NCBI GenBank assembly: GCA_002269645.1
Contig: NIVC01000489.1
Location: 1-56,022, forward strand
Direction: 5' to 3'
Source: Macrostomum lignano
Lineage: Eukaryota
DNA: 56,022 bases
Under the pieces are notes generated by a model, which was given only the letters and a program-made list of their open reading frames with translations, was not told the origin of the DNA and did no database searches. This document shows, piece after piece, positions 21,201-30,200 of the stretch (its first letter is position 1; the number at the start of each line of letters is the position of its first letter). The translations under genes and the position numbers were made by a program.

Positions 21201-24200
21201 ATAGATAGATAGATAGATAGATAGATAGATAGACAGATAGATAGATAGATAGATAGATAAATAGATGGATAGATGGATAGATAGATAGATAGATAGATAG
21301 ATAGATAGATAGATAGATGGATAGATAGATAGATAGATAGATAGATAGATAGATAGATAGATAGATAGATAGATAGATAGATAGATAGATAGATAGATAG
21401 ACAGATAGATAGATAGATAGATAGATAGATAGATAGATAGATAGATAGATAGATAGATAGATAGATAGATAGATAGATAGATAGATAGATAGATAGATAG
21501 ATAGATAGATAGATAGATAGATAGATAGATAGATAGATAGATAGATAGATAGATAGATAGATAGATAGATAGATAGATAGATAGATAGATAGATAGATAG
21601 ATAGATAGATAGATAGATAGATAGATAGATAGATAGATAGATAGATAGATAGATAGATAGATAGATAGATAGATAGATAGATAGATAGATAGATAGATAG
21701 ATAGATAGATAGAAAGATGGATAGATAGATAGATAGATATATAGATAGATAGATGACAGACAGCAGCCCACCTCCTCGCTGAAGTCGATCTTCAGCAGAG
21801 ACTTCTTGGTGGCCAGGATGCTTTGTGCCTGGCTGATCTGCCGGCTGGTGAGTTCGTTCTCCAAATCTTTGGGACCAACAACCGTCGCATACTGAAATGG
21901 GCTAACCCAGTTAATTACTAAAGTACCTGGTACATTACTGCAAAAGTTTGAGCTATAACTTGTAAAGAATCAATAACGAACCCTCTGAGCCAGTTTAGAC
22001 AACAGTTTCCAAGTCTGTTTATTATCCATAGAAACATAAACTTTATCGGGTTGTTTGCCAATGTTCTGGCCGAGTTCGGTGTAATACACCAGGTGGGAAT
22101 TCTGGTTGTCAACAAGCCATTTCTGGGTTATGTAGTTCTGGTTGGTCGGCATGCTCATGTCCGTGCAGACGCACAGAACGCTCAGGAGCTCCAGGTACTC
22201 GTAACACTGCCAGTGAGCGACGCGAAATTGCGGCAATGCATTTGATTCCAGGGATTCTTGTGGATTCTTGTGGATTCTTGTGGATTCTTGTGGACTCTTG
22301 TGGATTCTTGTGGATTCTTGTGGATTCTTGTAGATTCTTGTGGATTCGTGTGGATTCTTGTGGATTCTTGTGGATTCTTGTGGATTCTTGTGGACTCTTG
22401 TGGATTCTTGTGGATTCTTGTGGATTCTTGTAGATTCTTGTGGATTCGTGTGGATTCTTGTGGATTCTTGTGGATTCTTGTAGATTCTTGTGGATTCTTG
22501 TGGATTCTTGTGGATTCTTGTGGATTCTTGTGGATTATTGTGGATTCGTGTGGATTCTTGTGGATTCTTGTAGATTCTTGTAGATTCTTGTGGATTCTTG
22601 TGGACTCTTGTGGATTCTTGTGGATTCTTGTAGATTCTTGTGGATTCTTGTGGATTCTTGTGGATTCTTGTAGATTCTTGTGGATTCTTGTGGATTCTTG
22701 TGGATTCTTGTAGATTCTTGTAGATTCTTGTGAATTCTTTTGAATTCATCAACACTGCTTAAAGTGAGCCAGAAAAGGATCTGTCCTGAATCCCAAGCCC
22801 GGACTCACCCTGCTCTGCTGCAACAGGTTGATGTACTCCTCAACGTAGGGCTTCGGAATTCGGTCGATAATTTTGCGATTGTCCCACACGACGGCCATGA
22901 AGGTGCGGGCCGCATTGAGTTTGACTTCTTTCTGGAGAGCCAAATCAGCAGAAAATGTGGAGACAAATGGTGTGGATCTGGGACCCAAGTGTCCCCGGCA
23001 TAGATTGTGATGTAACTGCTGAATCATGGTGTGGATCTGGGACCCAAGTGTCCCCGGCATAGATTGTGATGTAACTGCGGAATCATGGTGTGGATCTGGG
23101 ACCCAAGTGTCCCCGGCATAGATTGTGATGTAACTGCTGAATCATGGTGTGGATCTGGGACCCAAGTGTCTCCGGCATAGATTGTGATGTAACTGCTGAA
23201 TCATGGTGTGGATCTGGGACCCAAGTGTCCCCGGCATAGATTGTGATGTAACTGCTGAATCATACAGGCTCGTGAATTCTGTACACAAGTACGCAGTCAT
23301 ACACACGCTCACACAGGGTGCACACAGCGGCCCTGACTTTCTAATTGTCAGGCATGGCATGTACATTCTGTGCCTTGGAGGTTGGAGGCTCTAGCATCTG
23401 GATACCCTGGACACGGCCGTCTAGATACCCCGGGCATCCGTATAGATACTCTAGGCACCCATCAAGATGCTATGGACACCAATCTAGATGCCCTGGACAC
23501 CTATCTAGATACACTGGACACCTATCTGGATATCCTGGACACCTATCTAGATACCCTGGACACCCATCTAGATACACTGGATACCTATCTAGCACCCTGG
23601 ACACCCGTCTAGATACACTGGACACCTATCTAGATACCATGGACACCCATCTAGATACACTGGACACCCGTCTAGATACACTGGACACCTATCTAGATAA
23701 CCTGGACACCCATCTAGATACACTGGACACCTATCTAGCACCCTGGACACCCGTCTAGATACACTGGACACCCATCTAGATACCCTGGACACCCATCTAG
23801 ATACACTGGACACCTATCTAGCACCCTGGACACCCGTCTAGATACACTGGACACCCATCTAGATAACCTGGACACCCATCTAGATACACTGGACACCTAT
23901 CTAGCACCCTGGACACCCGTCTAGATACACTGGACACCTATCTAGATACCCTGTGCACCCATCTAGATATCCTGGACACCCATCCAGATACCCTGGACAC
24001 CTATCTAGATATCCTGGACACCTATCTAGATATCCTGGACACCTATCTAACACCATGGACACCCATCTAGATACCCTGGACACCTGTCTAGATACAATGT
24101 TACAGATCACCTCACTGATAAAAACCGCGATTCTAAATAACTACCTGTGATCAGTAAAAAGAGTAGTACATGTAATACCTGAAGCCTCAATTGATGCAGG

Positions 24201-27200: not shown

Positions 27201-30200
27201 ACAGGTAAACATCACTGTCTAACAGGTATTACAGGTAAACATCACTGTCTAACAGGTATTACAGGTTAAAAATCACTGTCTAACTGGTATTACAGGTTAA
27301 AAATCACTGTCTAACAGGTATTACAGGTAAACATCACTGTCTAACAGGTATTACAGGTAAACATCACTGTCTAACAAGTATTACAGGTAAACATCACTGT
27401 CTAACAGGTATAACAGGTTAAACATCACTGTCTAACAGGTATAACAGGTTAAACATCACTGTCTAACAGGTATTACAGGTAAACATCACTGTCTAACAGG
27501 TATTACAGGTTAAAAATCACTGTCTAACAGGTATTACAGGTTAAAAATCACTGTCTAACAGGTATTACAGGTTAAAAATCACTGTCTAACAGGTATTACA
27601 GGTAAAAATCACTGTCTAACAGGTATTACAGGTTAAAAATCACTGTCTAACAGGTATTACAGGTAAAAATCACTGTCTAACAGGTATTACAGGTTAAAAA
27701 TCACTGTCTAACAGGTATTACAGGTTAAAAATCACTGTCTAACAGGTATTACAGGTAAAAATCACTGTCTAACAGGTATTACAGGTTAAAAATCACTGTC
27801 TAACAGGTATTACAGGTTAAAAATCACTGTCTAACAGGTATTACAGGTTAAAAATCACTGTCTAACAGGTATTACAGGTTAAAAATCACTGTCTAACAGG
27901 TATTACAGGTAAAAATCACTGTCTAACAGGTATTACAGGTTAAAAATCACTGTCTAACAGGTATTACAGGTAAAAATCACTGTCTAACAGTTAATAAAGG
28001 TTAAACGTCAACTCACCGCTCGAATCCGCAGGTGCACATCCTCAACCGGGACCTCGTTAAAGCTGCCCTCGCACACCAGGTAGGCCTCCAACTCGGTGTG
28101 AAAGAACCTGATTGGCTGACCAGCCCTGATGTTTTTCGTCTCCTTCTCGTGCTCAGTAAACCGCCTGACCAGGGTGAGGCCGCTGTATCGCACCGATAGG
28201 TTGAGCTCAAACGAGTTTTCGTACACGGGAATGTACTGCTTGCACTTGACTCGGCCGACATGCAGGTACTGACCGGGACTCTTCACACTCTCCAGAATCA
28301 CCTGATCCTCAATCTGCACCAAGTCGCCCTCGCCTTTGACTTTGAAACGCGGCATCACCTTGAATTGCGCTGCGCCAGCGTTGTCGGGGTTCAGCGTCAC
28401 CTGCATGTTGCTGCTCTCCGTCGGCGAAGTGTTCTGCGTGCTGATGTGCACGTACTTGCCTGTGAATGCGTGCTGCAGCTGAATCATCTGGCCGTAGAGC
28501 ACCTTCTTGCCTCTCTGGCGAGCCTGCTCCATGTCGTTGTCGTGCGCCTCGGCTTCGGCTGAGAGCTGCATTGATCGCATTTGGTAATAATTTGATGTTC
28601 TGGCAGTATTACTCGTTCAAGCTACTGTCGAACTCTCGCGCCGCAAGCCCCTGGTTTGATTCCGTACGCGGCCCGGAGTCCTGGGGTAAGAGTTCGTCCC
28701 GAATCGGGGAATACCGGCTGAGCCCGGGGTCCTCTTGCTCCTTGTGCCCCTCTCCGACCCCTTGGCCTGGCCCTTATTGAGCTGGATAGCAAAAAAAGCC
28801 TTGAGGCTCGTAGCCCTGTAGGTGACGGTCTTCCTGCCTGACAGGAGACTCGCCCATCGCAATAAGCTTCCAGACTCGCTCCAATAGATAAGCCCTATTC
28901 CGCAGACTAGGATATTTCCTCTCTCGGACCGCTTAAGCTTACTCCAATATTGTTTAGAGCTGGGTAGCAAAAAAGCCTTGAGGCTTGCAGCCCTGCAGAA
29001 TAAGAGGTTTTATTAGTATTATTAGTTTTATTAGTTTTATTAGCCCTGCAGAATAAGTCTTTTCACGCGCACACTTGGGTTTTGTCGTTGGGGAGTGGCT
29101 TGGGTGGACTCGGTCTTAGCACCGTCCCTGATGTCCACTTTTGGGTTGGTGGTGTCTTAGTCCATAGGCTTGGGTTAGGAGCACCAATAAGGTTAACTCT
29201 CTAGGCCACGAGGCCTGGTTCCAATCTGCAGGGCTGCTCGGGCTATATGGCCCTGGAGATCAGTCCCTGTCTTCTACTCGTAGCGACAGAGCCCTTCCCT
29301 GGGCTGATCCGCGGAAGCCCGCTAGGCTACCCACCCTCGTTTAACAACAACAAACCCCTGGTTTGATTCCGTGCGCGGCCCGCATTCATTTGGGGCTTGC
29401 GTGATAAAATTCTTACCCATGATCGAGGACCGACCCCCACGGCACAGAAAGTGTACACACGCCTGACGATTGGAAAGTCAGTGGGCCAGCCGCGTCGCCA
29501 CCGGGGGGACAGGGGGGCTCCAGTTAAAGCGATGGGGAGGACATTCCAATGCTTTGTCCCCCCCCCACTCCACCGTTGTGGTAATCAATGATTTTTTTAG
29601 GGCGCTGTACACCCTGTGTGAGCGTGTGCACGAGTTGCATGCCTGCGTACAGTATTGGTGCCTTGCATGGGCTCAGGAGCCAGCGGTATGGGCGGAACAA
29701 CATCGATTACCGATGATTGTGGGACGATTTCGGCGAAGGCGTTGCGCAAGGGTGCCCGCAGTCCTCCTACAAAAGTGATGATTATTATCCTATATGCAAA
29801 TTATCCTAACAACCCTGACAAGACTCACCTTTGCCTGCTCAAGCAGCACCTGTCGGACTTTATCTTTGGAGTCCTTGTGGAACTGGTGCAGCCTGTTGTA
29901 TTCCTTCAGCAGTTTGTATCGATTGATGGCGCAAATTTTGAAGGACAGCACTGGACGTACGGTAGGTGAAGGTGGCAGATGCAAATTGTGTAAAAATTGC
30001 ATTGAGAAATTGTATATTAAAACCTACATCAAGTCTGTAATGCACCTTTGATGAGCTCTGTAATATACCCTATATAGTCATACACATGACGTCTGTAATA
30101 AACCTTACATACTGTCTGTAATACACCCTAAAGCAAAGTCTGTAATACAGCCTACATGAAGTTTTTAATACACCCTACATGCAGTCTGTAATAAACCCTA

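Follow-up and report, generated by a model that had tools for sequence, protein, structure and literature searches.

Introduction

Two classes of intracellular release channel are familiar: the canonical inositol 1,4,5-trisphosphate (IP3) receptors (IP3R-A: vertebrate ITPR1-3, Drosophila Itpr and C. elegans itr-1) and the ryanodine receptors (RyRs), in which IP3 has no gating role. IP3RA, IP3RB and RyR have all been traced to the bilaterian ancestor (PMC7992859, citing Alzayady et al. 2015). Of these, IP3RB has received little study; it has disappeared from vertebrates, Drosophila and C. elegans, and leeches carry two IP3RB genes, one of which, ip3rb2, is enriched in touch neurons (PMC7992859). 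Here we describe a gene of the flatworm Macrostomum lignano that is probably a new member of IP3R-B, a family already known and sister to the canonical receptors. It lies on the minus strand of a stretch of 56,022 nucleotides (assembly GCA_002269645.1, contig NIVC01000489.1, positions 1 to 56,022), hereafter the window, which holds about the 5ʹ two thirds of the gene.

The IP3R-B protein of Capsaspora, studied in 2015 by Alzayady and colleagues, reportedly did not bind IP3 and released no Ca2+ when exposed to it, in contrast to the IP3R-A of the same organism. An earlier reading of the bare window sequence (the original prediction) had described an IP3R-like channel with a partly degenerate IP3-binding core. 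The best explanation of the data presented here, to which we assign a probability of about 0.75, is that the gene would encode a subunit of an IP3R-B type channel of the endoplasmic reticulum (ER), that its pocket for an anionic ligand has been re-specified, and that IP3 is not what gates it.

Results

Placement in the IP3R-B family

A first protein search retrieved the M. lignano UniRef entry P0001, another copy from the same flatworm, and partial sequences of Pinctada, Solemya and Branchiostoma proteins. A wider search returned about 20 relatives with all three of the pocket motifs described below, from molluscs, annelids, Saccoglossus and the sponge Amphimedon, together with more M. lignano proteins. 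When 1.84 billion representative sequences were searched with a profile, 3662 matched; the best 150 of these comprise the family of the window gene, canonical IP3Rs and protist relatives, and there is no RyR among those 150.

A neighbour-joining tree was built from 76 sequences and 610 columns, with 100 bootstraps. It recovers the canonical receptors as a clade with 100% support, among them barn owl ITPR1 and sequences of Trichuris, Caenorhabditis, Seison, a choanoflagellate and Corallochytrium. Outside this clade falls the window sequence, in agreement with the original prediction of a paralogue within the IP3R/RyR superfamily. It pairs at 100% with P0012 of M. lignano, and the pair groups at 98% with Ridgeia, Patella and two other sequences, as one of two spiralian subclades. 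In the second subclade (99%), further M. lignano copies occur together with many molluscs. Around the two subclades lie Saccoglossus, Intoshia, Tubulanus and Dimorphilus, and deeper joins bring in the sponge (61%), Capsaspora CAOG_04510 (51%) and Corallochytrium (80%). The B clade corresponds to the IP3R-B family of Alzayady and colleagues and spans flatworm, mollusc, annelid, nemertean, hemichordate, amphioxus and sponge, with Capsaspora attached more loosely.

M. lignano has at least three IP3R-B genes: the window gene, a sister copy that is about 60% identical to it, and a member of the second spiralian subclade. Its other IP3R-B entries (P0012/P0002, P0014/P0032, P0023 and P0200) are fragmentary and carry generic UniRef names.

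Ligand-site residues

The spliced product was aligned in three ways: by pairwise phmmer to the solved IP3R3 and IP3R2, by MAFFT within a set of 80 N-termini, and by a profile hidden Markov model (HMM) against mouse IP3R1 (5XA0). The first ligand segment, HLRIRA followed by V, spans 28034..28017 and 26710..26708 across a splice junction, and the junction codon reads Val whichever GTG is used. By phmmer and MAFFT, R265 of IP3R1 is retained (28028..28026), whereas T266 is replaced by Ile, T267 by Arg (28022..28020), G268 by Ala and R269 by Val. The second segment, NKNRTKLLR, has Lys at R504 and Thr at Q507, and keeps K508 and R511. The third, GESRKNELY, has Ser at Y567, within an ungapped block (SRKNEL against YRKNQE), and keeps R568 and K569. 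Of the IP3R-A contact set (R265, T267, R269, R504, K508, R511, Y567, R568 and K569), the window product departs at T267, R269 and Y567 and, conservatively, at R504.

For the second and third segments, the profile HMM gives the same result. R265 is followed by a loop five residues longer than that of IP3R1, and there the profile alignment slides the register by two, so that the second Arg of R-I-R stands at 265. Neither Thr267 nor Arg269 is restored in any register of the three alignments, and none of them places an intact equivalent of R269 or of Y567. The residues that the original prediction had aligned by hand therefore stand: R-I-R-A-V for R265 to R269, with R269 and T267/G268 lost, K/T/K/R at R504/Q507/K508/R511, and S-R-K for Y567-R568-K569.

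Conservation of the pocket

Are these residues peculiar to the window copy? In the canonical clade (n = 13), R265, T267, R269, K508, R511, Y567 and R568 are each found in 13/13 sequences, and all nine contact residues, R504 and K569 included, in 12-13 of 13. Among the 20 bilaterian members of the B clade, R265, K508, R511 and K569 are found in every sequence and R568 in 19. The replacements are constant or nearly so, with Arg267, Lys504 and Ser567 each in 20/20 and Ile, Val or Met at position 269 in 17/20. A basic residue also follows the conserved Pro of the inserted loop (P-K/R). The R, V, K and S of the window copy at 267, 269, 504 and 567 are hence the signature of the B clade. The Capsaspora protein P0047 is identical at these four positions, and most non-bilaterian members of the clade have the same replacements. 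The binding core is therefore not "partly degenerate", as had been proposed, since the same replacements are fixed across the 20 bilaterian members.

Contact positions in the B clade are enriched for invariance: 7 of the 11 do not vary, whereas the alignment as a whole has 48 such columns among 466 (p = 2e-5). In the canonical clade 7 of 11 are likewise invariant. Twenty-one columns are invariant in both clades. Seventeen of them hold the same residue in each; the four that differ (T267R, E512N, Q513L and Y567S) all lie at or beside ligand contacts. Because the replacements are fixed throughout the clade and the pocket is enriched for invariance, the odd residues appear to be an old, selected re-specification and not lineage-specific loss or decay. 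The pattern is that of a binding site whose specificity shifted a single time, early on, and was then maintained.

Domains and fold

The window product matches Ins145_P3_rec (PF08709, 9.7e-24), MIR (PF02815, 4.2e-16) and RIH (PF01365, 2.4e-15, with a second copy at 2.1e-6) in Pfam, all above the curated cut-offs. These correspond to a suppressor domain, a MIR beta-trefoil and an RIH armadillo region, in the order typical of the IP3R/RyR superfamily. No SPRY or RyR-repeat domain was matched by Pfam in the 1243 residues scanned. Exon 4, the largest piece, matches the solved IP3R3, IP3R2 and IP3R1, and RyRs more weakly. By phmmer, IP3R3 scores 1e-30 and RyR2 1e-14; with the family profile, the values are 3e-80 for IP3R1 and 1e-35 for RyR2. 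The exons are collinear with orthologues of 2200-2670 residues, against about 5000 in RyRs. Exon 29 aligns at 41-44% identity to the region of orthologues that bears PF08454 (RIH-associated), and its 80-residue piece has no Pfam match when taken alone.

The fold was modelled with AlphaFold on the M. lignano paralogue P0012, which is 62% identical to the window product, and what follows describes that paralogue. The model has a predicted local distance difference test (pLDDT) of 82.8 and a predicted template-modelling score (pTM) of 0.81, and its low-confidence parts are confined to two linkers and the loop that follows the R-x-R strand. IP3R3 and IP3R1 come first in a Foldseek search (E ~1e-37, template-modelling (TM) score 0.70), with RyRs behind them (E ~1e-27, TM 0.6). 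Against N-terminal crystal structures of IP3R1, the TM score is 0.83-0.87 on target length.

Pore and C-terminus of orthologues

The full-length orthologues P0013 and P0030 have the PF00520 domain and the S6 motif GIIVDTFSELRD. Besides this motif, full-length orthologues keep a CFIC..H..H zinc finger and the Ca2+-sensor Glu (TEY, here VEF or NEF). Among the orthologues compared (P0013, P0030, P0034, P0035, P0040, P0047 and P0195-P0203), the GGGxGD selectivity filter of IP3Rs and RyRs is absent from bilaterian IP3R-B proteins and from the Capsaspora member. In its place are HHGLSDGMYNTFEQ in Patella, RYGFLGILPEQ in Saccoglossus and RYGLIGDMFE in Dreissena; choanoflagellate and Corallochytrium members keep GGGLGE. 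A C-terminal fragment of M. lignano, P0200, reads FGLIGDLFDNL and also lacks GGGxGD. It looks like a member of the second spiralian subclade and so would not be the pore of the window gene itself.

Gene model

Scans of open reading frames (ORFs) and of all frames revealed a chain of coding pieces with IP3R-like translations on the minus strand, from about 31500 to 2999 (Table 1). Exons 1 to 11 (31507..22809), built from model P0001 and the GT..AG rules, encode a 604-residue N-terminal product from the ATG at 31507. Exons 12 to 22 (22206..11396), for which orthologues were the guide, continue in frame with them. Joined, the 22 exons form one 1421-codon frame (1421 residues), with GT-AG at every intron and no stop or frameshift. 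About seven further exons, down to 2999, were located by homology, and after about exon 29 the gene exits at the start of the window, with its transmembrane region and pore beyond. The 31 exons counted earlier in an intact frame come close to this number, although a single frame is verified for 22 and about seven more are placed by homology. The ends then given for the feature, 28565 and 22809, are true exon borders, being the first base of exon 4 and the last base of exon 11.

Translations of the window exons are 100% identical to the M. lignano UniRef models P0001 and P0044 (UniRef A0A1I8HBP4). The latter, an independent model, has the same junctions for exons 1-4 and 8-10, and the junctions of P0001 agree for exons 6, 7 and 8. 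The acceptor of exon 16 is uncertain, with two phase-compatible AG sites, and one small exon, possibly between 5473 and 4931, may be missing from the model. We considered an apparent exon at 5643..5440 as part of a nearby retroelement, and rejected this since it aligns to orthologues.

A second, weaker in-frame donor (GAG followed by GTCCCG) lies at 28051-28052 on the minus strand, 36 nt upstream of the main donor of exon 4. P0044 uses this donor and loses 12 codons, including the strand with the Arg equivalent to R265. The alternative donor could be an annotation artefact, or it could produce a real isoform that lacks a key pocket residue.

Table 1. Exons of the M. lignano IP3R-B type gene in the window.
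Exon	Position	Strand	Features and support
1	31410..31507	-	start codon 31507; donor GTGAGA; junction also in P0044
2	30533..30603	-	AG..GTAAGT, in frame; P0044 agrees
3	29829..29950	-	AG..GTGAGT; P0044 agrees
4	28017..28565	-	end of suppressor domain and start of binding core; terminal HLRIRA; acceptor cag, then CTC TCA (LSAEAEA)
5	26477..26710	-	first residue Val at R269 position (26710..26708), then longer loop DQSKPKT
6	25948..26026	-	AG..GTTGGT, in frame; junction in P0001
7	25745..25833	-	P0001
8	25023..25148	-	P0001 and P0044
9	24807..24941	-	carries NKNRTKLLR (24842..24816)
10	24179..24364	-	carries GESRKNELY (24247..24221)
11	22809..22931	-	end of 604-residue N-terminal region; INLLQQSR, then gtgagt
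12	21982..22206	-	in verified frame
13	20330..20401	-	in verified frame
14	20029..20250	-	in verified frame
15	19291..19537	-	in verified frame
16	18493..18688	-	variable loop; acceptor uncertain
17	18279..18422	-	in verified frame
18	17761..17953	-	in verified frame
19	15231..15475	-	in verified frame
20	15031..15154	-	in verified frame
21	12922..13308	-	second RIH domain
22	11396..11791	-	last of verified 1421-codon frame
23	10673..10744	-	homology; 24 residues
24	8179..8295	-	homology
25	5473..5577	-	homology
26	4802..4931	-	homology
27	3932..4087	-	tblastn with orthologues; borders approximate
28	3700..3861	-	homology; borders approximate
29	2999..3262	-	homology; upstream border approximate; last coding piece in window

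Introns and neighbouring genes

The window is very rich in tandem repeats. Tandem arrays fill almost every intron of the receptor gene, each intron with its own, and there are 29 strong arrays in 32 kb. Stretches that bear them include 1-2883, 8320-10586, 13452-14954, 15506-17747, 20745-21754 and 26755-28005, among others. Over the first 2.9 kb, (CTCCT)x580 makes a long polypyrimidine tract, the plus strand being nearly without G or A. Nearly all of intron 4 is occupied by 41 copies of a 31-bp unit, and other introns hold 142 copies of a 16-bp unit, (GTCT)n over 2.2 kb, or (ATAG)x252. The intron between exons 24 and 25 also contains a fragment of a non-long-terminal-repeat retroelement (5760-7980, plus strand), antisense to the receptor gene. 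It has a weak match to RVT_1 at 6592-6837 (25 bits, below the cut-off) and is surrounded by several broken ORFs.

Just upstream of the receptor gene, and on the same strand, a single exon at 33248-33877 (minus strand) encodes a DnaJ-domain protein of 210 residues (PF00226, 4e-26) with a hydrophobic N-terminus and a His-rich tail. On the plus strand, a protein-tyrosine phosphatase gene of at least two exons lies at 40329-41700 (PF00102, 1e-30 and 1.5e-6), and long (GTCT/GACA)-type arrays follow its exons at 41800-43200. A putative gene at 38598-39806 (plus strand) is an ORF of 402 residues that is extremely acidic, with EEDVKETVA-type repeats and then runs of Asp and Glu. Coding-looking tandem repeats at 52920-54403 and 54820-55725 are open in several frames on both strands (e.g. 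PDTNEQPL x ~40), and are probably minisatellites rather than genes.

Discussion

The window gene combines the domain order of an IP3R with a ligand pocket that differs from the canonical one in the same way as the pockets of its relatives. The loss of T267, R269 and Y567, which are invariant in canonical receptors, makes altered or non-IP3 gating, as the original prediction proposed, a reasonable inference.

Several observations count against a re-specified, IP3-insensitive channel. Seven basic residues of the pocket remain in place, and 267, which is two positions away from the missing R269, has acquired an Arg. The window copy departs at 6 of 54 positions that are invariant in other bilaterian members (Q507T among them), the sister copy at 1 of 49, and some relaxation of the window copy is possible. 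The tree is distance-based and contains no RyR, and support deep in the B clade is 51-61%. The channel domain of the window gene lies outside the window. Lastly, the Capsaspora result, to our knowledge the sole functional datum for IP3R-B, does not come from an animal. We take P0047 to be the Capsaspora protein tested by Alzayady and colleagues, its accession being different from that of the published IP3R-A and its place in the tree being within the B clade.

Given the retained basic residues and the added Arg267, binding of IP3 in an altered pose is conceivable; losing R269 while gaining Arg267 could amount to a relocation of charge. The channel would then still be gated by IP3, with Arg267 and the basic residues of the loop standing in for R269 and Ser567 acting as a hydrogen-bond donor, in a slightly different pose and perhaps with lower affinity. 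It would fit this proposal that R265, K508 and R511, said to have been the most critical residues in the mutagenesis of IP3R1 by Yoshikawa and colleagues in 1996, are invariant in the B clade, along with K569 and, but for one sequence, R568. The constancy of Arg267 and of the basic residue after the loop Pro, and the strong constraint on the pocket as a whole, point the same way. We nonetheless consider IP3 gating unlikely. The three residues replaced in the window copy, T267, R269 and Y567, are unchanged in canonical receptors from choanoflagellates to birds. E512 and Q513, beside R511, have also been switched throughout the clade, and the only family member tested, that of Capsaspora, is reported not to bind IP3.

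An alternative explanation for the odd residues is that the gene is a recent duplicate under relaxed selection or in decay, and that they record a function lost from this copy. Gene duplicates are numerous in M. lignano. The excess of departures over the sister copy P0012 is consistent with relaxation, as are the change of Q507 to Thr, private in the MAFFT alignment to the window copy and one choanoflagellate sequence, and the 12 codons with the R265 motif that model P0044 skips. However, Q507T is the only one of the flagged substitutions that is not family-wide, and the 1421-codon frame is undamaged. Functional-looking orthologues of Intoshia (P0033) and Dimorphilus (P0017), and P0036, show 7-9 departures, and the branch of the window copy is similar in length to that of its sister. 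We regard decay as highly improbable. That a canonical IP3R or a RyR was made to look atypical by misalignment or a wrong gene model is ruled out as far as sequence analysis reaches: the longer loop does leave the register after R265 ambiguous, with the profile shift of two, but no register yields Arg269 or Thr267, Ser567 stands in an unambiguous ungapped block, two independent database models confirm the junctions flanking the motifs, the tree keeps the sequence out of the 100% canonical clade, and the absence of SPRY and RyR-repeat domains, the IP3R-sized orthologues and the weaker RyR scores speak against a RyR.

What might a re-specified IP3R-B channel do? We propose that the protein would assemble into a tetrameric cation channel in the ER membrane, and that its N-terminal clam would still close on an anionic, probably phosphorylated, ligand. 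With the pocket re-specified, IP3 would either not be the physiological gating ligand or be bound with far lower affinity or in another pose; the proposal of a ligand other than IP3 is made partly because of the reported Capsaspora result. Gating would probably still be coupled to the conserved Ca2+-sensor Glu known from full-length orthologues. Ion selectivity may differ too, the GGGxGD filter being absent from bilaterian members of the family. More tentatively, the pocket may be a site for some other small anionic messenger, such as another inositol phosphate or a nucleotide-derived messenger, on a channel whose filter was rebuilt in animals. This is suggested because the four differently fixed positions sit at or beside contacts and the pocket is as invariant as in IP3Rs.

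If the pocket does serve another messenger, IP3R-B would constitute a third class of intracellular release channel with a function of its own, one that most invertebrate phyla possess and that vertebrates, flies and nematodes have lost. For the window gene, assignment as a flatworm IP3R-B gene replaces the description of an odd, possibly broken IP3 receptor. It also yields a testable statement, namely that the IP3R-B pocket is re-specified at T267R, R269 to a hydrophobic residue, R504K, E512N, Q513L and Y567S, fixed across animals. Together with the missing filter in bilaterian members, these changes point to a different activator and perhaps to different permeation. Generic ITPR1/2/3-like labels in databases invite the wrong transfer of function. 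M. lignano, a transgenic-ready flatworm, is a reasonable organism in which to find the function of IP3R-B.

How does the window gene compare with the known channels? RyRs, reportedly the sister group of IP3R-B, have the Ins145_P3_rec, MIR and RIH architecture of the N-terminus in common with it. However, the covered region has neither SPRY nor RyR-repeat domains nor the large RyR insertions, the orthologues are about 2200-2700 residues long and not about 5000, and scores are lower than to IP3Rs (1e-35 against 3e-80; TM 0.6 against 0.7). Like IP3R-A, it has an RIH region and seven of the basic pocket residues, and, as judged from the paralogue model, its suppressor domain and binding core are folded in the same way. 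The S6 helix, zinc finger and Ca2+-sensor Glu of IP3R-A recur in IP3R-B orthologues of the window gene. The window gene differs from IP3R-A in the replacement of T267, R269 and Y567, the switch of E512/Q513, the longer loop after R265 and an overall identity of about 22-24%, and its bilaterian orthologues differ also in lacking GGGxGD. The closest likeness is to IP3R-B proteins, which databases name "ITPR type 1/2/3-like" or leave unnamed. The window gene belongs to the same clade, has R-x-R at 265-267, Lys504 and Ser567, keeps K508, R511, R568 and K569, and has the same order of N-terminal domains. The distribution of the clade is also that of the family, in spiralians, a hemichordate, amphioxus, a sponge and unicellular holozoans, to the exclusion of vertebrates. 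Within IP3R-B, the window gene, visible in its N-terminal two thirds, is set apart as a lineage-specific extra copy with a few private changes such as Q507T.

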